Assembly (NCBI RefSeq): GCF_030028105.1
Contig: NC_092395.1
Location: 43,738,459 to 43,802,458 of the forward strand
Source: Mobula birostris
Taxonomy: Eukaryota
Direction of reading: 5' to 3'
DNA length: 64,000 bases
The notes below the pieces were generated by a model that was given only the letters and a program-made list of their open reading frames with translations, was not told the DNA's origin and did not search any database. The translations under genes and the position numbers were made by a program. Shown piece after piece: positions 750-35,869 of this stretch (within the stretch, counting starts at the first letter, position 1; each line of letters starts with the position of its first letter).

Positions 750-1030
750 AATTGTTCTAATTAAACCAAACACAATTTCAGAGAAAATTATTCACTGCCT
801 GAAATTTCCAGGAGCCAAGTAACTGTCAGTGTTACCACCGTGTAGCCTCTCAGTAAGAAAAAGAACAAAATCAGCCTCGGGTACAAATATTCCAACATCA
901 AAGTGGAAACTACAGAGAGCGGAACAGAAGGGAAGTACAGGGAAGAGCGAGTAAGAGCGGTAGAGGTGAAAGATACAAGGCCATGATCTCCCGTTAATCA
1001 AGAACAAACAAGGCCGAAGCCGCGCTCTGT

Positions 1031-1353
1031 TTAACAGCTGGATTGTGTGACTGTTGCGGATATTGTTGAGGCTGCTCCTTGTTGAACTGAGCAGGAGTAC
1101 CTCTTCCCACTGCTCCAGTCTGCGCTGGGCACCATCAGGTAGCTGCTGAGACTGAAGGTTTTGTCCGCTTTCTGAGTCAACCCGCTGGTTTGCACCTCAC
1201 TGCTCGTCGGACTGTCGTTCACTGTCCAGCTGATGACAGGGAAGCCGATCAACAATTTACTGACCAGGCAAACTGAGGTGCCCGTTCCTTTAGCTGAGAT
1301 CTCCACAGCTCACAGCCCAAGTAGTTTCACTGAAGGGTCCGTGAGTTGCCGAG
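1031..1353 (-). pseudogene. Immunoglobulin light-chain constant exon (C1-set; chondrichthyan sigma/sigma-cart-like), with premature stop
   Basis: A polypyrimidine tract and AG acceptor (ttcttttgttctcattcAG) lead into phase-1 xRQLTDPSVKLLGL*AVEISAKGTGTSVCLVSKL..ISWTVND..FSLSSYLMVPSADWSSGKRYSCSVQQG..TVTQSSC-TAA. Both Ig cysteines, the core Trp and the terminal interchain Cys are present. An in-frame TGA lies at 1310-1312. The isotype call rests on recalled similarity only. Confidence 0.85.
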
Positions 1354-1399
1354 CTGAATGAGAACAAAAGAAGATGTGTTTCAATACGCAAAATATCTC

Positions 1400-1760
1400 T
1401 CGTCATTCTTTTTACAAAATTATAAAAGTTTATTTACATCATATATACACAAAGTACAGACTTTCAATATTTACAAGACAGTAAGTATACTCAGATTAAA
1501 GTATGGTTACTACCGTCTATAAAACAGTCAATACCCTTTGGGGCCTATTGCCCCCATTCCTCCGTAGTTTGACAGAGCACAAGTAGAATGTTTTAGCTTC
1601 ATCGAGTGGGGCTGTTAGTCTCTCTGAAAGACAGCGCAGTGCCCATGGAGGACAGTGCATATTGCTTATACTGGAATACTGGAAATCTACTCCAATGGGT
1701 GAGGCTTTTTGGCGTTGATTCACCCCGGAATTGAGAGACGCACTGGCACCAAAGCGCCCC
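1400..1760 (-). mobile_element. Probable degraded L1/Tx1-like LINE 3' end
   Basis: T-rich end and composition resembling the reverse strand of Tx1 3' regions; no diagnostic ORF. Confidence 0.3.
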
Positions 1761-2262
1761 CAGAGTAATTAAGTCCCACTCTCTGTGCCATCAGTGACAC
1801 ATTCCTCCTCTTCCCTCCAACCCTCCCACCCGTCACTAATGGCTCCGTTGCTACAAACATCTCACAATCTGCTCAAATGAGCAGGTGGAGAGGATGCAAG
1901 GACTGGGCAGCGGGAGAGGGTCTTTTAATTGATGAGTACTGGAGGAGAGTTCCACCCTGATTGGGAGGACAGCAAGTCCAGTAAATGTCTGAAGGCTGTT
2001 TCGCGGGAATGTGCGAAACATAAGAAACTTGTTGTTCTGATGTATTGTCATAGACTGTCTTCAGCCGGCAATGTCCTGCCCTACTGTGTCCCTTCTCATT
2101 CGCTCCTATCAAAGCAAGATAAAAACTGACAAACTAACACTAGAACAGAAATAACACTAATGATCAGAAAGTGTTAAATCATAGTTTGTCCAAAAACGCA
2201 ACCGAAAAGAGAAATGTTTCATTAAGAGATGGTAACAATTCACTGAACACAACTGTCTCCCA

Positions 2263-3882
2263 TGTGACGGTGTCCTGAATTACCCTTATGAACTGTGCTT
2301 TTGAAAAGAGATAGAGGGAGGTATTTAACATCGACATGTCGTTTTGAAAAGAGAGAGAGAGACAAAGACTAACTTTTGGACTGTCACTTTAAGGCACGAG
2401 GAGGAACTGAGAATAACTTTTGGATTTCTGCTGAGCTGGAGAGAGAGAGAGCACCCAGCAGCTCGTAAGTCGCTATGCTGACCGAGGGTGGAGTTACTTG
2501 ATGGACAATTGATGTTATGATTTTTCGGCAGCGTATTTGTACTTCCCAAGGACATTTGCCTGCTTGTACATTTGTTACACAGACAAAGGAAGGAGGAGTT
2601 ATTTGAGAGACAGTTGGTACTCAGTACGGTGAGATAAATAGAAGGTCAGATGATAGACCTCAGGCACATGTTTTTGGACACTGAATGAGCTTTGTTGTAC
2701 CCACAGAAAAAGTGGGTTTTTGGAGGATCGATCAGGCGGATTGATCAGTGGCTCTTGCAGTGAGAAAAGGGATTGACCGGTGGGGAGTTGTCCATGTGTC
2801 CAGCCTTGCCTGGGTTGATGGCTCCACCACAGAAAAACAGTCCCCTTTGTTGTGGTCACAGTCAGTGACTTTTAAAGGATTTCAGAGGACAATGGGAAGA
2901 TCGACGGCGTCAGCTCACCTGAAGACTCAAATCTCTCCCTTTCTACTCAACTCAACTCAACACCGCGAATTGAACTGAACTTTACTCATTGTCATAAGAC
3001 TATCTATTTACCCCTGGACTTGAAGAAGCTTGGCTTTCATATATAAATTTTCCACACTGACTGATTTACTTACTTATGTATAAACATTGCGAACCTGTCT
3101 GATTGATCTACATTTATATTACTGTATTGCGTAGCTACTAAGGGAGGGAGGAGAAGATGGCGGCGCGACACAGTGTGCGCAGCCATTCCAAATGATATCG
3201 ATATGTGTAACTAGGGGTGCTGTGCACAATCCGGATTTGATGGAGACAGCCGTGAGAAGTGCAAAGGAACATCTGTAATAACTTCTGAAATGCCTGCTTC
3301 ACTGCTGTTGCTACTGTGCGATCGAGAATCTCCAGAGACGAAGGCCCCAAATCCTCGGCTTTGCATATCGCCTGTTGCTGGGGCCAGGGTCAAAGTGCTC
3401 GGCAGAGATGGTGCTCGGTGCTCGGTGTTGGGAGGTGGTTGGAGGCTCGGAGTTTTTCGGACAGACTCGGACTCGGACTGTGATCGAATGCTTCCAGAAT
3501 GCTGCACCGGCAAGTTGGCGGCACTGGAGGTTTACCGTCTGCATGAGATGATGGGACTTTCGAGAGTCTTTGAGACTTTTACTGTGCCATGGTCTGTTCT
3601 TATCAAATTATGGTATTGCTTTGCACTGTTGTAACTATATGTTATAATTATGTGGGTTTTTGTTAGTTTTTAAGTTGGGTTATCATGTGCTTTTGTGATA
3701 TCATTCTGGAAAAAACATTTTATCATTTCTTAATGCATGCATTATTAAATGACAATAAAAGGGGACTGCGTGTCCTCATAATCATAATCATCATGATAAA
3801 TATTATTAGTTAATAGCAATACTGGACTCCAAAGTGTTTTCCATTTCTGCTGGTTTGTTAACCCATCATGAGGTACGTGACA
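2263..3882 (+). repeat. 5' LTR (TG...CA), interrupted by a SINE-like insertion
   Basis: Matches 9292-9990 closely; ends GTGACA just before the PBS. Confidence 0.9.
3142..3795 (+). mobile_element. Non-autonomous retroposon (SINE-like or LINE 3' UTR), copy 1
   Basis: Starts gggagggag..aagatggcggcgcg and ends AATAAAA plus an (AATCAT)n tail; homologous to 33478-34107; interrupts the LTR. Confidence 0.75.
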
Positions 3883-3886
3883 AAAT

Positions 3887-3904
3887 TGGGGGCTCATCCG
3901 GGAT
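3887..3904 (+). promoter_or_regulatory. Primer-binding site, tRNA-Pro type
   Basis: TGGGGGCTCATCCGGGAT, one mismatch from the canonical tRNA-Pro PBS TGGGGGCTCGTCCGGGAT. Confidence 0.85.
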
Positions 3905-5676
3905 ATGAACAGATTGGTTGGGAGGCTTGTTTGAATTGATTGGGGAAAATCCCTTTTGATTTTCTTGTGTGGAAATACAGCAGAAATGGATGTTAGTGTT
4001 GAGAAGTTTATGCTGGAACCAACCCCAGAAGCGTTGGATGATGCTACGAGTGTTGTGCTGTTGGCAATTGCTCAAAAGTTAAGACTAAAGGTGACCACTA
4101 AGATAAGGAAAGCTCAGATGCAGACGGTAATAGCCCAGCATTAGATAGCTAAGGGAACGCTTGATGAGGAGGCGTTAGAGTTATTTGCTGAAGGTAAGGT
4201 ACTTACTGAGGCTGAGGTTCAGTTGCGATTGAAATTGAAACTAAAACAGCTCGAGGCTGATGAAGCAGAAAGGCAGAGGATCCATGAGGCTAGAGAGGCA
4301 GACAAACAGAGAGAAGAGGCAGAAAGACAGAGACAGTTTGAAAGGGAGATGAGGCAGCTGAGAAGTTTAGTGTCAGACCCTGATGATTTTTACAGCTCGG
4401 ATGTGATGAATTTAAAAGTTGTGTCCCTGATGATGTAAGGGCAAACCTAGGTTTGGAGGATGTTGCCACCCTGTGGGGGTCTGCTAAGAAAGCAGACGAA
4501 CATGTTATAACCCACGAGCTTGAGTTTACTCCAGATGAGAGTTTGCCAGAGAATAGCTGGGAGGTTAGGGGTGACCTTGAATTTGAAACTGGGACAAGTG
4601 ATGAAATCCCAGAAGAGGCAGTTGTCCTGATTGCCTATGTTCAGGTTGTTGAAGTACCTGTGAATTCACAGGGTTCTGAACCTTGTGTTGAAGCTCAGTT
4701 AAAGTCTGAGGTGTCTGATTTGGTTGGAAAGGAATGCAGTTTTTTTGTGTCAGATGATCTTGGTTCAGTGAATAAGGGGATAACCTTGGTACCGGTGGAA
4801 TGTGAGGGTTCTCAGACACTTGTATTAGACAGTGAGCTAAAAGTTAATGATGAGGTGAAAATTGATGAGGTAAGTTTTACTGAAAATAAGGGGAAAAGTG
4901 CTGTTCCTGGACTTTTGAGTAAAGTGCTGGGAAAGCTTGGATTTGTTGCACGACCTTTGACCCTGCTTGCAGAACAGAGGTCTGCTGAGGGAGGATGTGC
5001 TACTCTGTGGAATTTTGTTTGGACATTTGGATGTACACACCTGCAAGGTTATGATGTTGTGAAGAATCAAAATTGTTATGGTTTTGGGGTGGAAGTTGTT
5101 ATGGAAACAAGTCGAAGTGAAAGTCATAATCAGATGAACGGATTGTTTGGTCTATTCCACAATGTATACATGGTTCTTATAAGTCTGGTGATGGTGCTAA
5201 GTTTAGTAAACAATGGAGGAATTTTGAAACCTCTCCAAGATAAGGTCAATATAGCTGTTCAATTAATGAGCAAAGTTGCTGTTGAGAATTCACACAGAAA
5301 GACTGATATTTATCTCACATGTGCAGATAATCGAAGCATGTTTAGGAAGCCTGTAGGGGCCTATGATAGCAAAACCAGAGGTTTAAATTATGATGATGTG
5401 TCACAGACTTTTCTACCTTCCAGTTTTCCACAGGACTTAGAGGGTAGTAAAGCTGATGAGAGTAAAGTGTATGAGGAAGGTTTGTCTTTATTGAGGAAGG
5501 AATTTATAGAGGAACAGAAGGGAGATTCTGAAATGGTGGCTTTAAAGGAGATAGCCCTCACAGGAGAGGAGGTTCAGAGAGAGTCAGTTGGATATTATCT
5601 TAAAGATGGGGTGTTGATATGGAAGTGGAGACCAGCCACTGTGTGTACAAGTGAGAATTGGGTTATTGAACATTAA

Positions 5677-6309
5677 ATGGTGGTTTCGAAAGTTTACAGG
5701 GCTGAAATTTCAAGCATGGCTCACAGTATGTCTTTAGGTGGACCTCATGGAGTGAGAAAGACAGTGAACAGGGTTATGAAAGAATATTACTGGCCTAGTT
5801 TAAGGAAGGATGTTGTGAATTTTTACAGGACTTGCCATACTTGTCAAGTTGAGGGGAAATCTAAACAGGTTATTCAAGCCATACTACTTAAACCGATACC
5901 TGCTTTTGGTGAACCTTTTTCTGGGGTCATAGTGGATTGTGTAGGTCGATTGCTAAAGACTGCAGCTGGTTATCAGTATGTGTTAACAATTATGTGTGCT
6001 GTGTCTAGGTCCCCTGAAGCCATGTCTTTTGAAAACATCAAGGCCAAGATTGTGGTGAAGGCATTCAGTAAGTTTTTCACACTGGTAGGACTGCCCAAAG
6101 AAATTCAATTTGACCAGGGCAGTAACTTTACTTCAAGAACATTCCAGGGGATAGTTAGAGAATTGGAAGCTAGGTACATGGTGTCATCTGCATATCACAC
6201 AGAGCCCAATTATCACACAGAGTCCAAGGTAGCCTTGAAATGGTTCAGCTCCACTCTTAAGACCATGATTAAAACATATTGTGTGAAAAATGGGGAAAAA
6301 CTGGGATGA
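5677..6309 (+). pseudogene. Retrotransposon integrase (degenerate)
   Basis: AHSMSLGGPH..CHTC zinc finger and the first two catalytic Asp motifs are present. The catalytic Glu region is degraded, and an in-frame stop separates it from the 4453-5676 ORF. Confidence 0.88.
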
Positions 6310-6552
6310 GAGGGGTTCCCCTCCTCTTATTTATTATTGGAGATTCTGTTCAGAAGCCACTGGAGTGTAGTCTATTGGAACCTGTGTGCAGTTACAGGCC
6401 AAAAGAACCTTTGACCCTACTCAGAGAACTATGGTCTGATTTGGAAACATGTCAGTGTGCTTAATTCTGTTTTAAAATTCAAGAAGGGATTTAATAATAT
6501 TTGTGACCTTGCATAGGAAGGTTTCCAGAGTGTTCGAATTAAAATAAAGCAC

Positions 6553-9162
6553 TTGTTTATTAGAATGGCACCTGGGAGAATTGTTATGGAACAGAATGGA
6601 GTCATAAAGGCTGTGGAATCTGATAATGGAACGAAAAAACATGTTTACCCACTGAATCTAGTATCCACAAGATGTCAGAATTCCATTGTTTTGAAAAATA
6701 TTACTGATAAGGTCTATAAGTTGGACCCTACACCACAAAACCTAGTGAAAGAACTAATTAGCAAGCATGGAGATTTATCTTCTGACATTCTGAAAGGGTG
6801 CACAGGTGCAGTGCATCATGTCATTATAAATTCAGCACAACCCATGAAACAGCATCTTTACAGAGTGAACTTTGAGAAAAGTAAAACGGTTGAAGAAGAA
6901 ATTAGAAACAAGAAAGAACAAGGAAACAGAATGGATGACTGTATTGATAGAGTGGGGAAGGCTAAATACCTTATAAAGATTGACTTGTTAAAAGGATGCT
7001 GGGGTGTTCCTTTAACAGAGAGGGCTAAAGAGATATCAGCATTTGTGATACCGTCTAGACCAGCGGTCCCGAACTACCGGGCCGCAGAGCATGCTCTACC
7101 GGGCAACGATATGATTTGGTGATAGGAGTCAGCTGCACCTTTCCTCATTCCCTGTCACGCCCACTGTTGAGCCATTACGCATGCGAGTTCATTACCCGTA
7201 CGTCATCCATTTCAGCGCAGGAAGAAGATCAACCGCTCAATCTTGCAAATGACTGGGGGCTGAAAAGTATGTTTGACATAACAACTCCGCTGGCATTATG
7301 GATCAAAGTCAAGGCTAAATATCCTGAGATAGCCACGAAAGCACTGAAAACGTTGCCTCCATTTCCAACGTATCTCTGCAATGAATGTAACAAAATCTAA
7401 ATTGCGGAATAGACTCGACATTAGGAACCCCGTTCGAGTATCGCTGTCTCTCGTCACCCTTCGATAGGACCGTCTTGTTGCAGGAAAACAATCCCAGGGC
7501 TCCCACTGATTCAGCGATATTGGTGTGTTGCAACGATTTCATATGTTCATATGGGGAAAATAAGTGCTGCGTGTTTAATATCCAAACGATACTTAAAATG
7601 TCATGATGCTATTGACTTATATAACCATATAACAATTACGGCACGGAAACAGGCCATCTCTGCCCTTCTAGTCCGTGCTGAATGCTACTCTCACCTAGTC
7701 CCACCGACCTGCACTCAGCTCATAACCCTCCATTCCTTTCCTGTCCATATATCTATCCAATTTTTCTTTAAATGATAATATCGATCCGGCCTCCACCACT
7801 TCTACTGGATGTTCGTTCAACATTTACTTCAAGCTCCCCTGTCCTCCCCTGATAATTGACTTATCACTATAGCCATGAGAGGAAAATATGCGCTGTGCGT
7901 TTAATATTAAATTCGTTAGATAAACCGTTTTAGAAACAAAATTGAGTGTATTAGCTAATTATCATCTATATTCCGGTCGTGATTAACACCCCCCCCGAAC
8001 AAAATTGCCAAAAACGATTTGTAGAAAAAAAATCGTACACGCATGCTGAAGTTACGTATGCGCACTGGTGCCTGTGCAGGGCTTCACGGTCATTGTAGTC
8101 TTTCTCGGGGAAAACCCAGAGTATTTGACTGCTACTCTTGTCCGTTGACAACCCTACCCGCCCCCACCCCCCGGTCGGCCGGTCGGCAAGAATATTGTCA
8201 ATATGAAACTGGTCCGCAGTGCGAAAAAGGTTGGGGACCCCTGGTCTAGACTGTATGAATACCAGGTTTTACCCTTCGGGATGAAAAATGCTCCAGGGAC
8301 ATTTCAAAGAATGATCAATTCTGTGATTAGAGCTTTAGAAAACACAGGCGCTTATATTGATGGTTTAGTGGTCTGGAATAACATGTGGAAACAGCATATT
8401 AGAGCGGTAGAAAAACTGTTTGACAGACTTTCCAAGGCCAATCTTACTGTGAACCTCTTCTAAAAGTGAGTTTGGCCATGCCACAGTCACATACCTGGGT
8501 TATGTGGTGGGCCAAGGCCTACTGGCTCCTGTAGAGGCCAAGGTTCAAGCTATTGCTGAGGTTCCTGTTCCAACCGGCAATAAAACTTTGAGATGGTTTT
8601 TAGGAATGGTTGGGTATTATCGTAAGTTTTGTAAGAACCTTGCTGACATCACTGTCCCCCTAACAAAACTCTGAGGAAAGAGTGAAAGATTTGTATGGAA
8701 TGACCTTTGCCAGGGGGCATTTGAACGTCTGAAAACCATCCTGTGCTCAAAGCACCAGGTTTTTCCAAGCCATTTTCTATAGCAACAGACGCTAGTGATG
8801 AAGCTGCTGGGGCAGTACTGTTACAGAAGGGTGTGGATGACATTCAACACCCAGTAGCTTATTTCTCAAAGAAATTCAATGTGCACCAGAAAAATTATTC
8901 AACTGTTGAAAAGGAATTGTTAGCTCTTATTCTGGCTTTACAACATTTTGAGGTCTATGTTCAGAAACCTCAAAATTTTTCTGATGCCCAGAGACCTCTT
9001 GTGGTTTACACGGATCATAATCCGTTGGTGTTTCTAACTAAGATGAAGGATAAGAATAGAAGGTTGTTAAATTGGAGTCTGATATTGCAAGAATGTGACT
9101 TAGAAATCAAACATGTGAAAGGTACTGACAATATTATAGCTGATTGTTTACCCAGATGTTAA
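6553..9162 (+). pseudogene. Retrotransposon RT and RNase H remnants, split by a hAT insertion
   Basis: RT reads ..ISAFVIPS|RLYEYQVLPFGMKNAPGTFQR across the insertion; RNase H ORF at 8743-9162. Confidence 0.88.
7061..8243 (+). mobile_element. Charlie-group hAT DNA transposon, internally deleted
   Basis: Perfect 8-bp TSD GTCTAGAC (7053-7060, 8244-8251) and imperfect CAG(C/G)GGTCCC.. TIRs. It carries a C-terminal dimerisation-domain remnant (WIKVKAKYPEIATKALKTL.PFPT.YLC) and a CR1 3' fragment at ~7620-7790. Confidence 0.92.
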
Positions 9163-9291
9163 ATTGGAAATTGTACACATTTTTGGTCTGTCATCAGATT
9201 ATCATACATGTATTGTTTCAAACTCTGTAATTTACATTTAGACTAAAAGAAAATTTCGCCTTCATCAATTTTTTTTTCTGAATGAAGGGGG

Positions 9292-9990
9292 TGTGACGGG
9301 ATCCTCAATTACCCCTATGAAGTGTGCTTTTGAAGAGAGAGAGAGAGAGGTATTTAACACCGACATGTTGTTTTGAAAAGAGAGAGAGAGCGACAAAGAC
9401 TAACTTTTGGACTGTCACTTTAAGGCACGAGGAGGAACTGAGAATTACTTTTGGATTTCTGCTGAGTTGGAGAGAGAGAGACAGAGTACCGAGCAGCTCA
9501 TAAGTCGCTATGGTGATCGAGAGCGGAGTTAATTGATGGACAATTGATGTTATGATTTTTCAGCAGCGTGTTTATACCTCCCAAGGACATTTGCCTGCTT
9601 GTACATTTCTTACACAGACAAAGGAAGGAGGAGTTATTTGAGAGTCAGTTGGTACTCAGTACGGTGAGATAAATAAGTCAGATGATAGACCTCAGGCGTA
9701 TGTTTTTGGACACTGAATAGGCTTTGTTGTGCCAACTGAAAAAGTGGGTTTTTGGAGGATCGATCAGGCGGATTGATCAGTGGCTCTTGCAGTGAGAAAA
9801 GGGATTGACCGGTGAGGATTTGTCCATGTGTCCACCCTTGCCTGGGTTGATGACTCCACCACAGAAAAACAGTCCCCTTTGTTGTGGTCACAGTCAGTGA
9901 CTTTTAAAGGATTTTGGAGGACAATGGGAAGATTGATGGCGTCAGCTCACCTAAAGACTCAAATCTCTCCATCACTACTCAACTCAACAC
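9292..9990 (+). repeat. 3' LTR, truncated
   Basis: Homologous to 2263-~2970; homology stops near 9990. Confidence 0.88.
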
Positions 9991-10374
9991 CACGATCTGT
10001 TCATCAAGATCTGGGATGAGGAGAAGATTCCAGCTGAACTCAGGGACGTCCTGACTGTCACACTCTTCAAAACAGCTGAAAAAGATGATTGCAAAAATTA
10101 CAGAGCCATCTCCCACTTCTCTACAGCAGGAAAGTTACTCATTGAAATTTGTGTCACGAGCTTTCACCTCTGGCAGAAGAATTGAATTAAATTGAATTGA
10201 ATTGACTTTCTTTCTTAATCCTTCACATACATGAGGAGTAAAAATGTTTATATTGTGTCTCCATATAAATATGCAAAGTGTAATCTTAATAATTCAAAAT
10301 AATTTATAATAAATAGAACAGAACACGTAACATAGAAATACACTCAAATCAGTGTGAGTTAATCAGACTGATAG

Positions 10375-14280: not shown

Positions 14281-14555
14281 CGCGATACATAAAATTGGTA
14301 GTGTACGTGTACAGTCAGTTCCTCTATTAGCTAGACAGTCTCGGACAAAGGTCAACAAACTGTTGATCACAACCACTGTTATGAATAATTTCCAGCTCTT
14401 ATTAGTGAGCACAAGCAGGGAGGCATCTGCATATCATCCTGTCACCTTCATCATCCAAATCTTAAGCAATACTGAGCTAGTCAAGCTGGACAACAACGTT
14501 TAATTTAACTTTTATTTTTTCTCTTAAGTTACTTCCACAGCCATTCATGGAGAAC

Positions 14556-17500
14556 GTTTCTTTTATATTACCACTAAGGTGAATAAAATGGCTTCTCTGT
14601 ACTGTTAACTGCTGAGACAGTGGTTCTCTATAGCAGTATGTTTGGATTATAATTAGTGATAACGGGACTTGTATTCATTAGTTAACCAATTGTGATAGCT
14701 GTTATTGTTTCTGTCTGTGTGAAAGCTGTTAATTTGCGAGGGCTTCGGGGGAGAATGGTGTGAAGAGGATGAAGAGAGAAGACGTAGCTTGAGGAGATGG
14801 TTGCCGGACCCATTGGGCCTGAGCTCGGGGAGGGGGCCCAGGGGTCGACGACGAGCGAAGGAGGATTAACGAAAGGGAATCTGTGAGCTCCAACGTTTGT
14901 GCACTGGACATGTTTATGAGATTATTGGCGCCTTTGATTTGTTTTCCTTTTCTTTTGTTTCTCTACTAACTCCTATACTTAAATATAAAATCTTAATTGT
15001 TTAACAGCACAGTGTGGACTGAGTGTTATTTTGCGGTACTTATGTTAGACGGGACGCAACACACAGCATCTACACAAACTTGATTACCCAGTTTGGCAGG
15101 GCCAAAGGCTGCTATCCCTAGACGGAAGGGAGCTGAGCGAGACTGAGGTTTACCAAGGGCTACATTGTGGTGGCTATCATCCAGGATGTGGATTTTTGTA
15201 GGGTGCTGTGTGATTGCCATTTTTAAATCAGTGCTGCTGTGTCTTTGTGGGATTGCTGTCAGTAATGTGTCTCCCTGTGGAATTACAGTTAGTATTGTGT
15301 ACCTCTGTGGGATTATGGTTAGTAACAGATTGAGTGGGGTGGATATTCGTACCTTGGATGAATTGTGAATTCGATTTTTCAGTGTGGTTAAAGCAGATGG
15401 TGAAGTTGAAACCGTAGCGCAAAAGTTTGATAAATTGGCGGGCTCAGACCTTGCTTCAGGCGGGCTAGCACTGACATCATGGAGGTGGGATTGCCAGTGT
15501 CTGTTGGTGCCCCGGTGGGGCGGGGCCAGGGGCTGTCAATACTGTCAGGAGGGAGGGGAAAGAGTGGTCTGAATGGTCCATCTATGGCCTGGTCTTTGGA
15601 ATAACATTCACCCCTAAAGGGGCGGAGGCGTGGGTGGAGCGGACTTCGCAGTTGTTAGATGAGTGGCAGTGCTCGGCTGAGGGAAAGTGACAGGGTTTGG
15701 TTGGAAGTTTGGATAGGTGGGCTGTTGACCTTGTCAGAACTGTCAGGTTCAATTATCCCGTAGCAACAGCTACCAGTTATATGTAAGCGGAGGAAAATGC
15801 ATTTGGTTCGACTGGAATTAAAATGCGGCACCTGGGGGTCTTACCATACCTGTGTCAAGAGATTGGGGAAAGGCTTTCAGTGTATCTTCTGTGGCTCGGA
15901 GGGCAGCTAAATTGCTTGCAGTGCCAGGGGGATCATTTAAAGGGGTCAGCCCCTCCCTCAGTTGTTCAGCTGATCAGAGAGGTGTCGGGAAACTTAGTGT
16001 AGGCCCAGTGGGGGAACGGCTTGGGGTCTCTGGGGGAACACCTTCCCAGCAATATACCAAGGAACTCGGGGTCAACAAGTTTAATGCGAGGGTCTTTTTT
16101 TGTAAAAGTGAAATGTATCCTCCATAATTTCAGAGGTCTGCAAATCGTTACGGAAAGCATTGCAGCCAGAGGTCTTTCCCTGCCCTTCAGTCGGCCAATG
16201 CGAAGCCACTGCAGTGCAAGAGGAAATGAAATGCTACCAAGCGGACCAATCACAGTTGTTGCGGTTTGCGTTGCTGCGACGCGCATTTACATTTTGGGAT
16301 GGGTGCACGTCAGGCTACGGCGTTGGGAGCCACGTTACACTGCGTAGGTTTCGCGGTTACGTCGAAACTACCGCACTGAGTTTACGCAGAAGTATAAATC
16401 AGCCTTTAAAGGGGTTACTCCCGTGTGTGTCGTTACGGATAGATGGAAGCTATGCTAAAGCCATCCTTAACACCGTGGTGCATGCCAATTTGCTGCACAG
16501 TTCGTTTTGCAACCGGTATTTGAAGCATTTGCTCTCGGCACCATTCAAGGCACTGGAAATTCGGAATATAAATGCTAGGGATTATTCAGAAAACGATTAT
16601 GGGTCAGTGAAACTGGAGTTCTTGGAAGCCAAGGTGAAGGTATCTCATATTCATGAATCGTTAGTGCTGATGTGTCTGGACACTGTTGAGACGCACAGCG
16701 TTTCGATTCTGGACAGGATCAAGACCCCGCTGATGAGGAGGCGCAAGGGGGCCTGCCAGGAGGCGGGTGAGAGCTGTTCGGGGGCGTTGTCTGTGCACCC
16801 AGTGTTTTGAGCTGCTTGTGAGGACGTGTGTAGCAGCATTGGGCCGGTACAGAATTTAAACGAGAGCCGATGGTGGTACGGCCTGGGGGAAGTATCTGCG
16901 GGTGAGACCCTCTTAGTGGATGCTCCGACGTACCACGTGGGGGGGGCGGGGAGTTGACCGCTGAAGACAGCTCGGTGAGAAAGAGGTTGCGGCGACTGGG
17001 CTCTGTAGCTGTGGAAGACGTAGTCAGCGTGTGTGTGCATTATAGGAGTCTGAACAGGCGCATTGTCGTTGACCAGAATACGGTCCTGAGGGCCGAAGAC
17101 GAGATGGTCTGTTTGTGTGGTGCGACGTGGTTTAATATGCTGGATCTGAGGAGTGGATGTTGCCAGATCCCGATGAGTGAGGCCAACAATGAGAAACCCG
17201 GCCGTTATAGGTCCCCTAGGATTCTTCTGGTCCGAAAAGATGCCGCAGGGCATATCTGGAGCCCCTGCAACCTTTCTGTGGGGCATGAGGAAGACCATGG
17301 GGGATGTGGAGGTGTTTGGAGCTTTGATGTATGTGGATGATCGCCTAGGGTTTGGATTCGCCTTGGAAGACTATGATGTGAGGCGAGTGCCGGAGCATGG
17401 GACAGCCATTGAAGAATTGGAGTTCACGCTCGGCAAAGTGGAGATGGGGAAACAGAAATCCAAGTAGAAATTGCGGTCATTTACCGATGAATTAATCCGG

Positions 17501-18874
17501 AGAGACGAAACAATGACCAGACTTTGAAAGGATCAGCGGAAACTCTAGAAATCGATCCAGACAGATTGGAAGAAGTTGGTGGGATAACTGCACACCAGGT
17601 GGAGATGGACACGGAGCGTGGGTCAGAACTGCTGAGACTGCGGCGAGAGTTGGAGGAGTCAGAGAAGAAGCTGACGTCTCGATTACAGGAGGCTGAAGAG
17701 GCTGCAGCGGCCGCCAAGGCTAAGTGCTTCAGTTTGGAGAAAATTAAACAGCAGCTACCGATCGAGGAAATGACGAAAAATACGGATTCGAAGGATGACG
17801 TGCGGGATGTGTGTACATGTTGCCCTTCGCTAACTTCCCCTTGATTGATGAAGCGACTTTTGGCCCTTCTCCCACTGAGTCAGGTGTAGTGGGGAGGGCT
17901 AGCTGTGGGCAGTCTGGGTTACTATAGGACCCTGAAGGAAAAGAAGTGGTGACCCGGACACGGGACAGGTGGTTCCGATTTGCAGTCGGGGCATGAGTGA
18001 GGGATTGAGAGAGGAGTTGTCAAGCAGACCCGAGGTATCTCCAGTTGAATCCGAGCCGGAAGGGTTTAGATGAGGGGTTATGGAGGTCTAGGAGGATTAG
18101 GAAACTCTCAGATATGTTGGCCCATGTAGCGCCTGGAGAACAGGGCGTAAGGTCTACTGTTTGGGTTTTTGTGTCTGCAGGGAGTGTTGGCGAGTTATTT
18201 AGAAGTCATAAGGACATGACTAAATTTGGTGGTAGGAGAGTGTAAGGGTACATTTTTTTATGTCACTGCTGAGGTGAATAAAATGGCTTATGTGTACTGT
18301 TAACTGCTGAGACATTGATTCGCTATAGCAGTATGTTTGGATTATAATTAGTGATAATGGGACTTGTAATCAGTTATTAACCAATTGGGATAGACGTTAT
18401 TCTTTCTGCCTGTGTGAAAACTGTTAGTTTGCACGGGCTTCGGGGGGGGGGGGGGGGGACAAGCTACGAAGAGGATGAAGAGAGAAGACATAGCTTGAGA
18501 AGACAGTTACAGGAACCGCTGGACCTGGGCTCAGGAAGGGAGTGCAGGGGTCAACGACGAGCGAAGGAGGATCAGCGAAAGGGAATCCGTGGGCTCCAAC
18601 ATTTGTGCACTGGTCATGTTTATGAGATTATTGGCACCTTTTATTTGTTTTCCTTTTCTTTGGTTTCTCTACTAGGCCCCCATACTTAAATATAAAATCT
18701 TAATCGTTTAACTGCGCATTGTGGACTGAATGTTATTTTGGGGTACTGGTGTTACACAGGGGATACAACATGCAGCATCCACACAAGCTTGATTACCCAG
18801 TTTGGCAGGGCCGAAAGCTGCTCGCCCTAGATGGAAGTGAGCTGAGTGAGCCTGAGGCTTACCAGGGGGCTACA
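14556..18874 (+). mobile_element. Non-autonomous Gypsy LTR element (PNMA-like gag) carrying a myosin-derived insert
   Basis: LTRs at ~14556-15164 and 18241-18874 (TGTAAG...CTACA). Degenerate PBS TGGTGGCTATCATCCAGGAT; PPT GGTGGTAGGAGAG. Gag/zinc-knuckle/protease remnants at 15500-16810. RT ([17 protein letters not shown]) is cut off just after the YxDD motif. Confidence 0.85.
17405..17766 (+). pseudogene. Captured sarcomeric myosin heavy-chain rod fragments (three pieces)
   Basis: Three gapless matches to recalled MYH7-type rod peptides. [39 protein letters not shown] ~ [73 protein letters not shown] ~ [66 protein letters not shown] ~ [33 protein letters not shown]. Confidence 0.88.
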
Positions 18875-20156
18875 GTGAGCACAAACAAGGAGGCATCTAC
18901 TTATCATCCTGTCACGCTCATCATCCAAATCTTGAGAAATACTGAGCTAGTCAAGCTGGACAACAACATCTAATTTAACTTTCAATTTTTCTCGTAATTT
19001 ACTTCCACAGCTATTCATGGAGAATGATTCAAAGTCAATAATGAGGAAACATCCATGGTTATTTGCTTTCCTGGAACATAGTTAGAGACCTACAACCTCT
19101 CCCAGCAAATTCTTAAAAGCTTCATCTCTCCACGGTTTAATCAAGGCGTACACCATGACTGCTCAAAGTATTTTAGAAATCTATTGGAAAGCTACATGAA
19201 GAAGAGAAGATGAGTAAAGGAATTCTCATACACTGAGACATTCAGGCAGTGAACTTCATAGAGAAGGTCGAGATGCAGAGAAAACATTAATAGAGATAAT
19301 GTTTGGTGGGACAATTGTGACTAGGGTTATTTGTCATAGTTGTTCTGAGGTTTCTTTAAAAAAAAGCTTTCACTGGCCTGTCACCATCTAACAACATTCA
19401 AAAAATGTGTCATTATTCAAGTGATCCGTGTATTTCAATGCTTACTACTGCAGTTAGTTTGATATCACAAGCTAAGCAACAGCACAAGATTGCCGAGACT
19501 CCAAATAAAGATACAAACAAAATATAAAGATAATACAGTGCACGTGGTACCATTTGAAATAATCGCTTCCAATGGAAAAGCAAAAAGGGAGACTGCAGCA
19601 ATTGGAACTAGTTACTTGCCATAAAATGATTTTGCAGTAGTTTTCAAGGGGTAAAATGTGTGACTCATCAAAATGTAGATCTGTGTCTGAGCTCATTAAC
19701 TACTTTTTTTTTTCACCAGAAAGGTGTTAACAGATATGATCATCGTTAAAGGGGAGTGTAGAAGTGTGTGGCAACAATCGTGAAATTGGCAAGTTCTGCA
19801 TGAAATCAGAATACATTACTGATGCGTTTATCAGTGCAATAGAAGAAGTTGGCAGTGATGCCGGAGTAAGTTTGGGATGAAGACTGTTCCATATAGCCAA
19901 CAACAAGACAGGCTTAGCTAGGCACATATAAGTACTTATGGTCTTGATATTCTTGAGTGTTGTTGAAGCTGTTCTCATCCAGACAACTGGAGAGCATTCC
20001 ATCGCATGACTGCCTTGAGCTTTGTAGTTGGTGGATTGGATTTGGTGAGTTCGGAGGTGACTTACTCGCTGCAACATTCCAACCTCTCATCTGCTTTTGT
20101 AGACATGTTGTGCATATGGTCGGACCAATGGTAGAAAATTGCATTTACATCCAGGT

Positions 20157-25350: not shown

Positions 25351-26951
25351 CAGTGACATGCAAATGTTTGAGCACACCTGGTCAAAATTTCTGCTACTGC
25401 GAGTGAAAGATGACCTGATTTCCAAAAGGCATAAAGTTAAAGATGACACATTTCTTTAATATTTTAAGCAAGATTACTTTTTTATTTCCATCTTTTACAG
25501 TTTCAAAATAACAAATGGAAAAGGGCCCGAAGCAAAGGCTTGCACACCCTGCACGGTCAGTATTTAGTTACACCCATTTTAGTAAGTATCACAGCTTGTA
25601 AGTGTTTTCTGTAGCCAGCTAAGAGTATTTCAATGTTGGTTTGAGTTATCATCGCTAGTTCTTCCTTGCAAAAGGCTTCTAGTTCTGTGAGATTCTTGGG
25701 CCGTCTTGCATGCACTGCTCTTTTGAGGTCTATCCACAGATTTTCAATGATGTTTACATCAGGGGACTGTGAGGGCCATGGCAATACCGCCAGCTTGCTC
25801 TTGAGGTTGTCCATTGTGGATTTTGATGTGTGTTTAGGATCATTATCCTGTTGTAGAAACCATCCTCTTTTCATCTTCAGCTTTTTTACAGAGGGTGTAA
25901 TGTTCGCTTCCAGAATTTGCTGGTATTTAATTGAATTCATTCTTCCCTCTACCAATGAAATGATCACCGAGCCACTGGCTGCAAGACAAGCCCAAAGCAT
26001 GATCGATCCGCTCTCGTGCTTAACAGTTGGAGAGGTGTTCTTTTCATGAAATTCTGCACTCTTTTTTCTCAACATACCTTTGCTTATTGTGGCCAAAAAT
26101 TTCCGTTTTAAATTCACTAGTCAACAGGACTTGTTTCCAAAATGCACCAGGCTTGTTTAGATGTTCCTTTGCAAACTTCTGATGCTGAATATTGTGGTGA
26201 GGACGCAGGAAATATTTTCTTCTTATGACTCTTCCATGAAGGTCATATTTGTGCAGCTGTCGCTGCACAGAAAAACAGTGCACCACCACTGCAGAGTCTG
26301 CTAAAACTTTTTGAAGGTCTTTTGCAGTCAAATGGGGGTTTTTCTTTGCCTTTCTAGCAATGCTACGAGCAGCTTTCTCAGAAAATTTTCTTGGTCTGCC
26401 AGACCTCAACTTGAGCTCCACCATTCCTGTTAACTGACATTTCTTAATATTACGAACTGAGGAAACAGCTACCTGAAAACGTTTTGCTATCTACTTACAG
26501 CCTCCTCCTGCTTTGTGGGCATCATTTATTTTAATTTTCAGAGTGCTAGGCAGCTGCTTAGAGGAGCCCATGCCTGCTGATTGTTGGGACAAGGTCTGAG
26601 GAGTCAGGGTTTATATAAAGCTTTGAAACTTGCATCATCTGGCCTTTCCTAACGATGACTGTGAACAAGCCATAGCCATAACAAGCTAATTAATGTCTGA
26701 GAACTTCGCAAAAGTTATCTGAGAGCTCAAATCTCTTAGGGTGCCCAAACTTTTGCATTGTGCTCCTTTCTTTTTTTCCACTCTAAACTTATACAAAACA
26801 AAAATAATACATTAATCTTGCTTAACATGTTGAAAATGATGTTTCATCTTTAACTTTATGACTTTTGGAGATTAGTTTATCTTCTACTCACTTAACTATT
26901 CACAGTAACAGAAATTTTGACCAGGGGCGCCCAAATCTTCGCATGCAACTG
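25351..26951 (-). mobile_element. Tc1-like DNA transposon, full span, frameshifted transposase
   Basis: TA TSDs and TIRs CAGT.CATGC.AA..TTTG.GC..CCTGGTCAAAATTTCTG. HTH region at 26044-26424; DD34E region at 25557-26117 (QQDNDPKHTS, WPSQSPDVNIIENLW). Confidence 0.95.
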
Positions 26952-30300: not shown

Positions 30301-33197
30301 GTTCTTTAACTTAAACAAATATCCTTCAATGGGATGCGTTGATAACAGGTTATATTGTGATTGAAGTTCCACCCGTTGTTTAAATAAATCAATATTGGGG
30401 GAAATTGCATAGATATAATCTAAATCTTTAACATGTTTTGAAATTCTATCTAATTTCGCTTTAGATTTTTTTTAAATTTAGCTGAATAAGAAATAATCTG
30501 ACCACGTAAAACTGTTTTAAATGTATCCCATATAATTAATTTAGACATACCACCTATATCATTAAAAAGAAAAAAAACCTTATCTGGGTTGCAGTGAAAT
30601 TGACGAAGTCAGAGTTTTGCGATAATGTCTGAGACATGCGCCAAGGTGGGTGGACAAAAATGACATAATCAAATTCAAAAGACAAACTCAGAGGCGCATG
30701 ATCAGATATAGCAACAGTGTCATATTTGCAAATTTTAACACGGCAAGAAGCGGGGATCGATTATAATGTAATCAATCCTCGATTATTTTTATAAACATGC
30801 GAGAAGAAAGAATATTCTCTATTATTGGGATGGAGATACCTCCACAAATCAATCAACCCAAAATCAATCAAAAAGGAATTAATGAATGACGTGGATCGAT
30901 TTTGAAGTCACTCATTGGTTGAGCTCTTATCAATCATAGGATTTAGGCAGCAGTTAAAATCCCCACCCATTGTCAGCATATATTCATTTTAATTAGGTAG
31001 TAAAGCAAATACCTCTTTAAAATAAAAGAAGGATCATCCAAGTTAGGAGCATACAAATTAACCAAAGCAACTTTTCTATTACAGATCGTTCCTTTATCAA
31101 TTAAAAATCTACCATTAGAATCTGATTCAATATTCTCTTGAATAAATAGATTAGGTTAAATAAAAATAGACACGCCTTTTGTTTTACTCTGAGAAGTAGA
31201 GTGGAATTGCAAACCATTCCACCATCCTAAAAATCTATTTTGATCTCTCGCCCTGATATGTGTCTCTTGAACATAAAGTATATAAGGTTGGAATCGGTTA
31301 CTAATTTTAAAAGTCTTTTTTCATTTAATAGGATGATTCCAAACAATTACATTCCAACTTATTATATTAATCCGTTTAAATACCATACTATAATTTTATT
31401 CTACTTTATATATGCGCAGAGCACATACCAATACGGGATGATCAAAGATGGCGGTGATGACGAATACAAACACATAAAAAACACGCATGCTCCGGAACCA
31501 CTCAAAGGGAAAAAAAAATCTCCTAACTCTAAACCCACCCACCCACCCACCCACACCCGGAAGCCCAAAAAAGGCAAGCGACCTGCTATAGAGTTCAAAG
31601 CCACTGACCGCTCTGTCTGTGTTTTCTTTTCCTCCCCCCAGTTAGTAAAGAAGTAAAGTGACCTTGTAAAAAAGACAATAAAGTCTCAGCAAAGAAAGGT
31701 ATTTACATTCCATCAACTAACAAACAAGAAAGAACCAAAATAATGTTATCTCTTAGAGAGAAAAGCAGCGCCATCTTTAAGTTAAATATTAATCCCCTGA
31801 AAAACATTACATTCAATTATAAAATGTTATAATAAAAGAGAAAAAAATAATAGTATATTTGACCTAGCTGAATTTTCAAAAAGACTGATTAATAAGTCAT
31901 AAGTAATTAAACCCTCCCAAATATATATAGCCCCATTACTAGAAAAACTACCAATTAGCTGATTAAAAAAAGAAATATACAAAATATTAAATTAAAGGAA
32001 CAAATCCCCTTATCTTCTTCTCTCAGTCGAATGTTCACGTGATTATTTAGACAGTCATACTTGAGCCGTAAATCTTCTTTCCAAAGTAATACCAACAATA
32101 TGCAAAAATGAACAACTCTCCTTGTCTTCTTTAATTAATTTCTCAATGAAATATGCAAATGACCTTCATAAATCTTCTTTCTAAAATGCGAATAATATAC
32201 AGATAGCCAAATAGCCTTTCACATAGTTCCTTCAGCAGCGACGTCGGTAACAACGGCTGGTATAGCCTGAACAAAGACCAGCGCAGCTTTCGGATCAAAA
32301 AAAAAGTCCGAGGAGGAGAATTAGCAGGAAAAACTTTAACTCTTGCCGGATACCTCAAAGAGAGAAAGAGATTTTTTTTTATCATATGCCTGTTTCATTA
32401 CCAGGGCAAATTTTGATCTTTGTTCCATAATCTCCCTTGGATAATCTTCGTAAAAGCGGAGCTCAGATTCCATAAATCTAAAAACTTTGTTTTCTTGCCT
32501 GTCGCATCATTTGATCTTTAATTTTAAAGGGATAAAAGCAAACCAGAACAGATCTTGGTTTACTAGAATCCTTCAGTTTTGAAATAAACGCCCTGTGTGC
32601 CCTTTCGATAGCGGGCAGCTTTGACAGAATGGTAGGAAATAAAGCGTGGAAAAGCGTACCGAAGTAAGCAGTTAAACCTCCATCTTCAGTTCCTTCTCGC
32701 AGTCCAACAATTCTTATATTCTTTCGGTGAGACCTAGTTTCCAGGTCTTTAATCTGATTTTGATATCTTTCCAAACGAGTTGTATCTTCAGACGACTTTT
32801 GCTTAGTTATCTTCAATTCCTCTTCATTTGTAATAACTTGAGTTTCCAGGTCTTTAAGTTTTCCCAGAACGGAGTTAATTTCATTACTAATCTTTCCCAG
32901 TTGGTCTTCCATTGATCCATTCTGATCTTTAACTGAATTCAGTGTCCGAACGATATCTTCAGCCCACGATGGCATTTCATCAGACCTTTCCTTTTGCACC
33001 TTTCCTGTCCCATTACTTTTATCACTAGGTTCAGCTAAATTCTTCCTATTTCCCGTAGACATAGACATATTGTTCCCCGTCAAGAATCAGTAAATAAAAA
33101 TTTTAAATTCAAAGTTTAAACAAGGGGGAGAGAAAGAAAACTAAGGCCAGCACAAAATTAGTGCTACTCCATTTGCAGATAGGGGCGGTCCTCCTAT
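27320..33197 (-). mobile_element. Full-span L1-clade LINE (degenerate ORF1 and ORF2)
   Basis: 11-bp TSD GTTTAGTTCCA (27309-27319, 33198-33208). ORF1 at 32478-33083 (RKNIRIVGLREG, IERAHR). ORF2 starts MVFKRINIISWNV at 31386, with RT motifs SLDAEKAFDRV, RGARQGCPLSP and SLYADD. Confidence 0.93.
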
Positions 33198-34107: not shown

Positions 34108-35869
34108 AAAACCTCCGTTCCCTGTCAGTAGACGTAAGAAAGGTCAGTGAAGAGGTCGACAGAGTATCCACCCATCTTACCCCGTCGACTCCGGGAACGC
34201 TGTCTGACCAGCCCAGACATCCTGTATTGGCGATGCCCGATGCGTCAACAACACGTCCGCTAAGAGAGCCGCACGTACCTGAACCAGAACCCTACGCCGG
34301 AGATCTGGGGAAGTGCCGGGCTTTTCTGCTGCAATTCTCCTTTGTGTTCGAGCAGCAGCCATCCACATACGCCGCAGACAGGTTTAAAATAGTTAACATT
34401 ATATGGTAGTTGAGAGGAAATGCCTTAGCGTCCGCCACCACCATTTGGGATAATCAGCCAGACACCTGCTCTTCCTTCATCTCAGAAATAAGGAAGATTT
34501 TTGACCATTCCGTCTGCGGTAAAGATGCCGCTAAGCGGCTACTCACCCTCCATCAGGGCTCACGTAGTATTGCCGAATACTCCGTGGAGTTCCGGCCACG
34601 AGCGGCCGAAGCGGGCTGGAATGATGAGGCACTCCAGGAGGTATTCCGGCAAGGCCTCTGTGACAAGGTAATGGACGAGTTGCCAGCTAGGGGATGACAC
34701 TAACAGCTTGGATTCATTGATCTCCCTAGCCACAAGGCTGGACAACCGACTCCCAGAACGTCAGAGAGAGAATCGGTCGTCCTACTCCTTTGGCTACCCC
34801 ACGACACGATTTACCATCTACTCCCAGCCCTAACCTCTCTGCTCCTCCTCCTCCTCGAATAGCATCCGGCCCGGCCGTTTCCACCAGCCCAGGAGAAGAA
34901 CCAATGCAGCTGGGACGGAGCCGTCTATCTCCCTCAGAGCGAATCTGGAGATTCAGAGCAGGGGATTGTTTCTATTGCTGTCAGTCTGGACGTTTTCGTA
35001 TTTCCTGTTCCCATCGGCCAAAAGGGAGGGCTCACCAGTAGAAAAGGGGACTCTGGTGAGTCAGACTACATTCCCTTCTGTCCCCCAATTCCGGATGCAG
35101 ATCCAAGCCACAACCAACAGTCCCTGTCCTTGTCTGCCTTGATAGACTCTGGTGCTGAGGGGAATCTGTTGGATGAAAACATAGCTTCTTAGGCCGGAAT
35201 TCCCCATGAGCCGTTGACTACCCCTCTGGAAGCCCGAGCACTGGACTGAAGACTTCTGGCCGAGTCACTCACTGTACCCCACCACTGTCTTTGATTCTCT
35301 CTGGGAACCATCGGGAACAGGTACAATTTAACTTGATCTCCTGTCCTCAAGCTCCAATGGTACTTAGGTACCCCTGGTTAAGCCGCCAGAATCATTACAT
35401 TGATTCATCCACCGGGAAGATAGCCAGCTGGAGTCCGTTTTGTCACGCCACTTGTCTACAGTCGGCCCTTTCCCCTGTAACAACTACCGCGACCTCATCT
35501 GCCGCTGAAACCCCTGACTTATCCAGGGCTCCAGCAGAGTACCACGATCTGGGGCAATTGTTTAGTAAACAATACACCCTTTCCCTGCCTCCACACCGAC
35601 CGTACGATTGTGCTATCGACCTTCTCCCCAGAGCTCCTCTACCCACCAGTCGATTGTATAACTTGTCCTGGCCAGAGAGGGAGGCAATGGAAGGTTACAT
35701 CAGTGAATCTCACGCGGCGGGCATTATCCGACCCTCTTCCTCCCCGGTGGGCGCAGCGTTCTTCTTTGTAGGTAAGAAGGATGGTTCTCTCCGTCCTTGC
35801 ATCGACTACCGAGGCATAAATCATATTACTGTAAAGAACAAGTACCCACTGCCTCCTCTCAGTTCTGCG

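Follow-up and report, generated by a model that had tools for sequence, protein, structure and literature searches.

How does a long terminal repeat (LTR) retrotransposon in a ray genome come to carry sequence resembling the rod of a muscle myosin heavy chain (MYH), directly downstream of a truncated reverse transcriptase (RT)? The element in question occupies positions 14558-18874 on the plus strand of a 64,000-nucleotide stretch of Mobula birostris DNA (NCBI RefSeq assembly GCF_030028105.1, contig NC_092395.1, positions 43,738,459 to 43,802,458 of the forward strand), hereafter referred to as the window. All coordinates given are window positions, and MYH7 residue numbers are those of human MYH7. 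A first-pass annotation, made from the letters alone, had described three myosin-like peptides inside a Gypsy-type element and had proposed a non-autonomous family carrying host muscle-gene sequence. Our analysis points in the same direction: with a probability of roughly 85%, we consider the element a dead member of a family of non-autonomous Ty3/Gypsy-type LTR retrotransposons in myliobatiform rays, and the ancestor of this family to have gained spliced sarcomeric MYH mRNA sequence and later spread.

The insert of the window copy consists of three pieces, which are collinear with the myosin rod and lie on the sense strand of the element. Piece 1 (17405-17560, plus strand) corresponds to MYH7 residues ~954-1004 or slightly beyond and contains three in-frame stops, piece 2 (17563-17658, plus strand) corresponds to residues ~1148-1181 (the RLEEAGG...RRDLEE region) and piece 3 (17647-17766, plus strand) to residues ~1381-1424 (the ELEEAKKKL...AKCSSLEKTK region). 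Their identities to myosin are ~18/51, 17/33 and more than 21/33, respectively, in agreement with the counts first reported for three gap-free peptides from separate parts of the rod. Pieces 2 and 3 form a stop-free open reading frame (ORF) of 106 amino acids at 17524-17844. Searched against all PDB chain sequences, this ORF matched striated myosin heavy chains only (best E 1.3e-7), among them MYH7, MYH4 and the striated myosins of insects and tarantula, and aligned as separate blocks to MYH7 residues 1143-1181 and 1372-1424; the domain alignment that includes piece 2 extends over MYH7 residues 1143-1222. Piece 1, with its stops read as X, matched MYH4 and MYH7 at residues 954-1004 in a phmmer search of PDB (E 7e-4 to 5e-3), and its top 10 matches were all striated MYH at the identical position. 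The insert also contains the diagnostic motifs RLEEAGG..QIEM and AKC.SLEK. Furthermore, a profile built from 15 sequences of the family described below, with no real myosin included, found striated MYH rods only (E 5e-14 to 5e-7), and no smooth or non-muscle myosin II passed E 0.01 with this profile. The similarity is thus specific to the striated MYH rod and collinear with it, as had been claimed against a generic coiled coil. The donor paralogue, for which MYH7B/15/16-like genes had been suggested, cannot be named from these data, as bit scores for MYH7B-like, MYH6/7, MYH4 and teleost MYH sequences lie within a few bits of one another, and the MYH7B, MYH16, fast and cardiac paralogues are not separable in this comparison. 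The insert holds rod fragments only, with no motor domain or neck and with two large internal gaps, and its interpretation as a myosin gene is ruled out by this content together with the three stops and a frameshift.

The window element is one of many related copies. Logan contigs from five organisms (A to E) were placed on the locus at a minimum identity of 80%. The unique flanks were covered by 1-4 contigs, and each position of the insert by 7-66 distinct contigs in organisms A, C, D and E. In organism A these amounted to 7-46 distinct contigs per position for piece 1, 8-24 for piece 2 and 44-66 for piece 3, with similar values in C, D and E. The join between RT and piece 1 is spanned by contigs of organisms B, C and E, that between piece 3 and the downstream tail by contigs of A, C and E. 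Across the five organisms, each genome has dozens of distinct contigs with these junctions. Some other copies extend into further myosin beyond 17767, as seen in one contig and in the family protein P0012. A zero-mismatch contig of single-copy depth spans 17420-17631, and misassembly is thereby excluded for the window's own sequence. Family contigs were also present in sequencing runs of organisms A and C that may be RNA, although none of these runs is recorded as such.

When 1.84 billion representatives were searched exhaustively with HMMER, 13 short proteins with 46-77% identity to the window ORF ranked above any true myosin. A subsequent word-based search raised the total to 22 proteins, all of them RefSeq models, from Mobula hypostoma, M. 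birostris, Hypanus sabinus and Hemitrygon akajei. They are distributed over at least 17 chromosome-size contigs and encode RT-myosin-tail or myosin-tail ORFs with the same joins as the window copy. Dispersal to many chromosomes is therefore observed directly, and the dispersed copies with shared junctions are the signature of secondary retroposition. Both the expectation of a mobilised multi-copy family, as opposed to a single intron-containing rearrangement, and that of spurious myosin-like gene models were confirmed: the models bear names such as "myosin heavy chain, skeletal muscle-like", "myosin-16-like", "putative uncharacterized protein MYH16" and "myosin-7B-like", and one is annotated as an SDHAF3 isoform. 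The family ORFs are 127-432 amino acids long and lack a Myosin_head domain. P0001, a single-exon ORF of 297 amino acids, reproduces the window order exactly (RT, piece 1, piece 2, piece 3, tail). P0013, P0022, P0024 and P0026 connect RT, or protease (PR) and RT, with myosin, and RT and myosin share one frame in P0008, P0022 and P0026.

Two of the models combine repeat sequence with other coding segments. P0009 (Hypanus sabinus XP_059828575.1, 'succinate dehydrogenase assembly factor 3 isoform X1') consists of a genuine SDHAF3 N-terminus followed by ~130 residues of the myosin-plus-tail repeat, and P0011 (Hemitrygon akajei XP_072921390.1) combines repeat sequence with protease-like and SDF2/MIR-like segments. 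Either the repeat has been exonised here, or the genes were modelled incorrectly.

The window copy holds 120 rod codons, and other family members hold up to ~250. In the least-deleted members, P0025 and P0023, the MYH7-equivalent residues ~915-1113 are contiguous and are followed by ~1157-1189 and ~1386-1424; P0012 and one contig reach residue ~1432 or beyond. Two gaps of ~42 and ~200 residues are present in every member and must accordingly be ancestral. Neither gap falls at exon borders, which argues for deletions or extra template jumps and not for exon skipping. Family members are 55-90% identical to each other and form lineage-specific subfamilies in Hypanus/Hemitrygon and in Mobula. Given these subfamilies and an identity of only ~28-30% between the insert and MYH, compared with 55-90% among members, the capture must be old, and it probably predates the split of the Hypanus/Hemitrygon and Mobula lineages.

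The source of the insert was a spliced transcript, as judged from its continuity across parental exon junctions. These junctions were located by mapping a lungfish MYH7B-like protein (P0017, numbering equal to human MYH7 + 10) on a MYH gene of the moray eel Gymnothorax javanicus (L001), with identical intron positions assumed for ray MYH genes. In the eel gene, an intron starts with GT directly behind ...ATENK and ends in AG, after which VKNL opens the next exon, and ...ELEEAK/KKLA is interrupted by a GT..AG intron within the K codon. The window copy is uninterrupted both at ENK/VKN (between 17471 and 17472), the position originally named as a MYH exon junction, and at the EEAK/KKL codon (17662-17664). 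Longer family members are also uninterrupted at the VDD/LEG and KLKK/KDFE junctions. Since two MYH exon junctions are crossed without introns in the window copy, the source was spliced mRNA, provided that the assumed ray intron positions hold. Intronless host sequence on the sense strand, replacing internal ORFs between both LTRs, is what is expected of an LTR-mediated retrocopy.

The element itself is delimited by direct repeats at 14558-15159 (5' LTR, plus strand) and 18253-18874 (3' LTR, plus strand), which bear out the two-LTR structure described initially. Each LTR is ~600 bp in length, and the 3.1 kb of internal sequence that separates them brings the element to ~4.3 kb. The LTRs share 86.5% identity, with a Kimura two-parameter (K2P) distance of 0.151, or 0.113 when CpG sites are excluded. 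The 3' LTR is bounded by an intact TG (18261-18262) and CA (18873-18874); the 5' LTR terminates in ...GCTACA, with its starting TG mutated to TA, and both LTRs end in CA. Contigs cover the 5' LTR at high multi-copy depth in four genomes. The 3' LTR contains a poly-G run of ~18 G at 18446-18463, where the 5' LTR reads GGGGGAGAATGG, a homopolymer expansion private to one LTR.

Downstream of the 5' LTR, the region in which gag would be expected (15160-16430, plus strand) was free of domains in a Pfam search of its ORFs. Within it, the segment 15964-16357 shows a summed contig depth 5-10 times that of the remainder of the element in four genomes (maximum ~58,000 versus 1,000-10,000) and holds CCAAT-box-like and TATAAA-like motifs. 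This segment is probably common to a far more abundant repeat family, or a nested insertion. A putative degenerate aspartic protease follows at 16430-16740 (plus strand), recognised by motif and family alignment only: the ORF 16160-16810 includes a retropepsin-like IDG...LNTVV stretch and has no Pfam match. Translations, RVT_1 and the family alignment place a truncated Ty3/Gypsy-type RT with frameshifts, comprising fingers and palm, at 16950-17396 (plus strand). Its motifs LDLRSGCCQIPM, GAPATF and MYVDD lie at ~17130-17345, with MYVDD at ~17331-17345. The RT had been reported to stop just after MYVDD; its truncation was confirmed, with similarity continuing ~17 codons past YVDD to ~17396. The window RT ORF matched RVT_1 only, and weakly (E 0.012), and the same domain was found in the better-preserved P0001 and P0013 with E values of 1e-6 and 9e-6. 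Residues 1-259 of P0013 are collinear with window positions 16613-17398, and its best relatives among the sequences of solved structures are Ty3 RT (4OL8, E 2e-13) and Ty3 Gag-Pol (7Q5B, 1e-12), followed by a caulimovirus polyprotein (2.5e-3); no retroviral RT passed E 1 in this search. The element is therefore assigned to the Ty3/Gypsy type, as first proposed.

Neither RNase H nor integrase was found between 17400 and 18252 by Pfam or in translations, and the pol order PR-RT-RNase H-integrase is accordingly incomplete in the window element. Since its pol region retains no more than a putative PR and a truncated RT, we regard the element as a non-autonomous derivative and an incomplete member of Ty3/Gypsy. 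The insert is followed by a family-specific non-myosin tail (17767-18227, plus strand), which is conserved in P0001, P0023 and P0010 to ~17993, includes the deepest contig coverage of the stretch (17848-17895) and carries a basic stretch, RSRRIRK, at ~18078-18100. The tail has no Pfam match and is probably retroelement 3' sequence. A purine-rich run resembling a polypurine tract (18228-18249, plus strand), read from the sequence and with a putative function, adjoins the 3' LTR upstream. Rfam and tRNA-gene scans of the element were empty.

Comparison with other copies indicates that two of the joins seen in the window are not those of the original capture. The junction between RT and piece 1 lies at 17397-17402 (plus strand) and includes a shared GGG codon at 17400-17402. 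Contigs that leave the window at 17389 or 17396 read RDPGRLGINE, and contigs that join it at 17398 are preceded by RLETECCNF; these two stretches are contiguous in P0008, which keeps ~45 additional codons on the 5' side, consisting of more RT and then more myosin. In P0008, RT proceeds via a GL.LN..KC-like stretch to ...SEKIC, where it is fused in frame to myosin ...TAELNAQKCRLETECC... The boundary between RT and myosin in the window is thus a secondary deletion, as other copies and P0008 keep codons that are missing there. Likewise, the join between pieces 1 and 2 (SIQN/RLEE) is a secondary deletion between RLED and RVEE repeats and is shared with P0001, P0005 and P0008. Pieces 2 and 3 meet within a common ELEE (17647-17658), as already noted on first inspection, and derive from positions about 200 residues apart in myosin. 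Secondary-deletion joins in the window coincide with short repeats, namely GGG at 17400-17402 and ELEE at 17647-17658. The earlier interpretation as a non-autonomous family carrying host muscle-gene sequence is supported, with the qualification that the RT/piece 1 and piece 1/piece 2 joins of this copy arose secondarily within an older and longer insert.

Piece 1 had been described as containing three stops, and these were seen. It lies in another frame than pieces 2 and 3, and this offset results solely from a one-base deletion at 17560-17561 (plus strand): behind 17560, other contigs carry one more A. Pieces 1 and 2 occupy a single frame in P0001, P0005 and P0008, and the missing base is private to this copy or its lineage. 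With three stops and the frameshift, the window copy is dead; it is a product of secondary deletion and belongs to a short subfamily. At typical vertebrate neutral rates, from which the elasmobranch rate may differ, the LTR divergence of 0.11-0.15 would correspond to tens of millions of years.

These observations suggest the following origin of the family. In its ancestor, the RT C-terminus, RNase H and integrase were replaced by the sense sequence of a spliced MYH rod mRNA covering MYH7 residues ~915-1432. The capture most likely took place in a virus-like particle during reverse transcription, by template switching, in which RT moved from the element RNA onto MYH mRNA and then returned, and would constitute LTR-mediated retroposition, analogous to the transduction of oncogenes by retroviruses. 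An intronless partial cDNA in sense orientation, replacement of pol, retention of both LTRs and dispersal, all of them observed here, are together the hallmarks of this process. With its LTRs, 5' leader and polypurine-like tract retained, the chimera could have been copied in trans, presumably by an autonomous Gypsy partner. Its spread appears to have been accompanied by the loss of internal coiled-coil blocks at the short repeats RLEE and ELEE, which may have occurred by copy-choice and would have given rise to nested subfamilies; at the protein level, nested deletion subfamilies are observed. After insertion, the window copy decayed, acquiring three stops and a one-base deletion while its LTRs diverged by ~14%.

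Several observations weigh against this scenario. No gag was recognised by Pfam among the ORFs of the 5' internal region, and no primer-binding site was recognised (a TGG occurs 3 nt past the 5' LTR and was not matched to any tRNA). A search with the PR-RT region of P0013 for an autonomous partner returned family members only, and no related RT was found elsewhere in the window, which contains a single copy of the family. Summed contig depth is not copy number, and the other copies are known from protein models and contigs. Over long stretches, the insert retains only ~28-30% identity to real MYH. Finally, integrase is expected to generate a target-site duplication of 4-6 bp, and the element is instead flanked by a duplication of 153 bp. 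The left (14405-14557, plus strand) and right (18875-19027, plus strand) copies both abut the element and match each other without gaps at 88.9% identity; the left junction is backed by a zero-mismatch contig (13600-14602) and the right by a contig with 2 mismatches (18845-19208). The K2P distance of the pair (0.121) is close to that between the LTRs, and because of this equal divergence the duplication resembles a very long target-site duplication, possibly formed by non-concerted end joining or at a staggered break.

Among other routes to the same structure, the one known from retroviral oncogenes is unlikely but deserves the most weight. Here, the element would have landed within a MYH gene or ahead of one, read-through and splicing would have produced a hybrid RNA, and a single non-homologous recombination with a co-packaged element RNA would have restored the 3' end. 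The resulting arrangement, in which a 5' LTR, PR and partial RT lead into spliced host exons and a short 3' element tail precedes the second LTR, is indeed the layout of an acutely transforming retrovirus, and the common frame of RT and myosin in P0008, P0022 and P0026 is in line with it. However, the fusion lies inside RT coding sequence with no recognisable splice donor, and the two internal gaps common to all members are better suited to multiple template jumps. Much less probable is a processed MYH pseudogene made by a long interspersed nuclear element (LINE), nested in a Gypsy copy and amplified later. LINEs are abundant in ray genomes and the window includes an L1-like ORF1, but the fragment comes from within the rod and has neither the mRNA 3' end nor poly(A), pol was replaced rather than interrupted (neither side of the insert contains RNase H or integrase), and the insert lies on the strand and in the frame of RT. 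Strand, frame, replacement and poly(A)-type features have previously been used to separate LTR-mediated from LINE-mediated retrocopies (Tan et al., PMC5131818).

Two further explanations can be dismissed with near certainty. A one-off local rearrangement or assembly artefact would agree with the single copy in the 64-kb window, but is refuted by the exact independent contig at 17420-17631, by hundreds of diverged contigs from five organisms and by the 22 RefSeq models from four species with the same joins. The possibility that a generic or retroelement coiled coil resembles myosin by chance was considered, as weak cross-matching of this kind does occur (the L1-like ORF1 at 32478-33083 matches Tropomyosin and ATG16 below cut-offs) and Pfam did not report Myosin_tail_1 for the 106-aa ORF, for which only sub-threshold Fez1 and DUF matches were obtained. 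This explanation is equally refuted: the significant PDB matches are all to striated MYH, are collinear and include the diagnostic motifs, and the family-only profile reaches E 5e-14.

Under the favoured reading of template-switch capture, the myosin cargo was most likely a functionless passenger. It is improbable, although conceivable, that the coiled coil was more than cargo and that, in active lineages of the family, the frame comprising PR, RT fragment, coiled coil and tail has been under purifying selection because it aids the defective element. Such aid might take the form of a fusion protein that multimerises and enters the particles of a partner, or of an action in cis on its own RNA. 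If true, selection on the coiled coil would explain the in-frame fusions and the long open frames in diverged copies, and a retrotransposon would have co-opted a structural domain of its host to help itself replicate.

The remainder of the window contains additional mobile-element sequences. A second, younger LTR pair (2347-2944 and 9378-9976, 93-96% identical and 7.0 kb apart) encloses integrase (Integrase_H2C2 and rve) and RT fragments in ORFs 5677-6309 and 6553-7122; it showed no tblastn match to the myosin-bearing family and is unrelated to it. On the minus strand, a 703-aa open frame at 35870-37981 contains a SCAN domain (Pfam E 1.6e-14) and adjoins an RT fragment on the opposite strand (35291-35968); this frame may be a gag-related ORF of a Gmr30-like Gypsy element of cartilaginous fish. 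Also on the minus strand, a 201-aa ORF at 32478-33083 encodes a coiled coil followed by a RKNIRI.GL.E motif typical of LINE-1-type ORF1. With only sub-threshold matches to Tropomyosin and ATG16 and no relation to the insert, it was rejected as a second myosin fragment. A DNA transposon remnant with a DDE_3 transposase domain (Pfam E 1.8e-12) is located at 25557-26117 on the minus strand.

The family provides a clear vertebrate case in which an LTR retrotransposon transduced a host mRNA and then thrived as a defective family across a ray order, and it indicates that LTR-mediated retroposition is able to seed long-lived repeat families beyond isolated retrocopies. In the nested deletions at RLEE and ELEE, RT template jumping on repetitive coding sequence has left a natural record. 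The repeat has given rise to at least 22 RefSeq models across four ray genomes, and such models may inflate myosin gene counts; the RT-myosin family should therefore be included in elasmobranch repeat libraries.

A parallel is found in the acutely transforming retroviruses, in which replication genes are swapped for spliced host cDNA, often in frame, leaving a defective and helper-dependent genome. These viruses are infectious and their cargo is selected for its effect on the cell, whereas the ray family is a germline, Metaviridae-type element carrying a structural rod fragment with no evident function. The sarcomeric MYH genes (MYH1/2/4/6/7/7B etc.) are the source of the rod sequence, and unlike them the ray element has no motor or neck. 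The kind of event is known; what stands out here is how many copies the family has, how old and how widely distributed among taxa it is, and how it affects annotation. Our literature search found no description of a ray RT-myosin family, consistent with the novelty initially suspected for it; the mechanism, however, had already been described (Tan et al. 2016, PMC5131818). Cases of LTR-mediated retroposition are on record for animals, plants and yeast, some with internal ORFs replaced or with secondary retroposition, and the resulting chimeras can act as non-autonomous elements and retropose again (PMC5131818). The metazoan LTR retrocopies of Tan et al. (2016, Genome Res 26:1663; PMC5131818) likewise carry partial, intronless sense mRNA in place of internal ORFs between LTRs. 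Those cases, from fly, mosquito, zebrafish, chicken and mammals, are young and mostly of single or low copy number (PMC5131818), whereas the ray family is old, reaches dozens or more copies per genome in at least four ray species and has diversified into deletion subfamilies. In the human genome, the capture of FAM8A1 by HERV-K (Jamain et al. 2001, cited in PMC5131818) similarly involves a vertebrate LTR element enclosing host mRNA; it is a single locus of retroviral class, in contrast to the amplified Ty3/Gypsy-class element of rays. Maize Bs1 (Elrouby and Bureau, cited in PMC5131818) is likewise a non-autonomous LTR retrotransposon that has transduced fragments of host genes and forms a propagating family. 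Bs1 reportedly combines pieces of three genes at low copy number in a plant host, whereas the ray family carries sequence from a single donor, the MYH rod, at higher copy number in a vertebrate.

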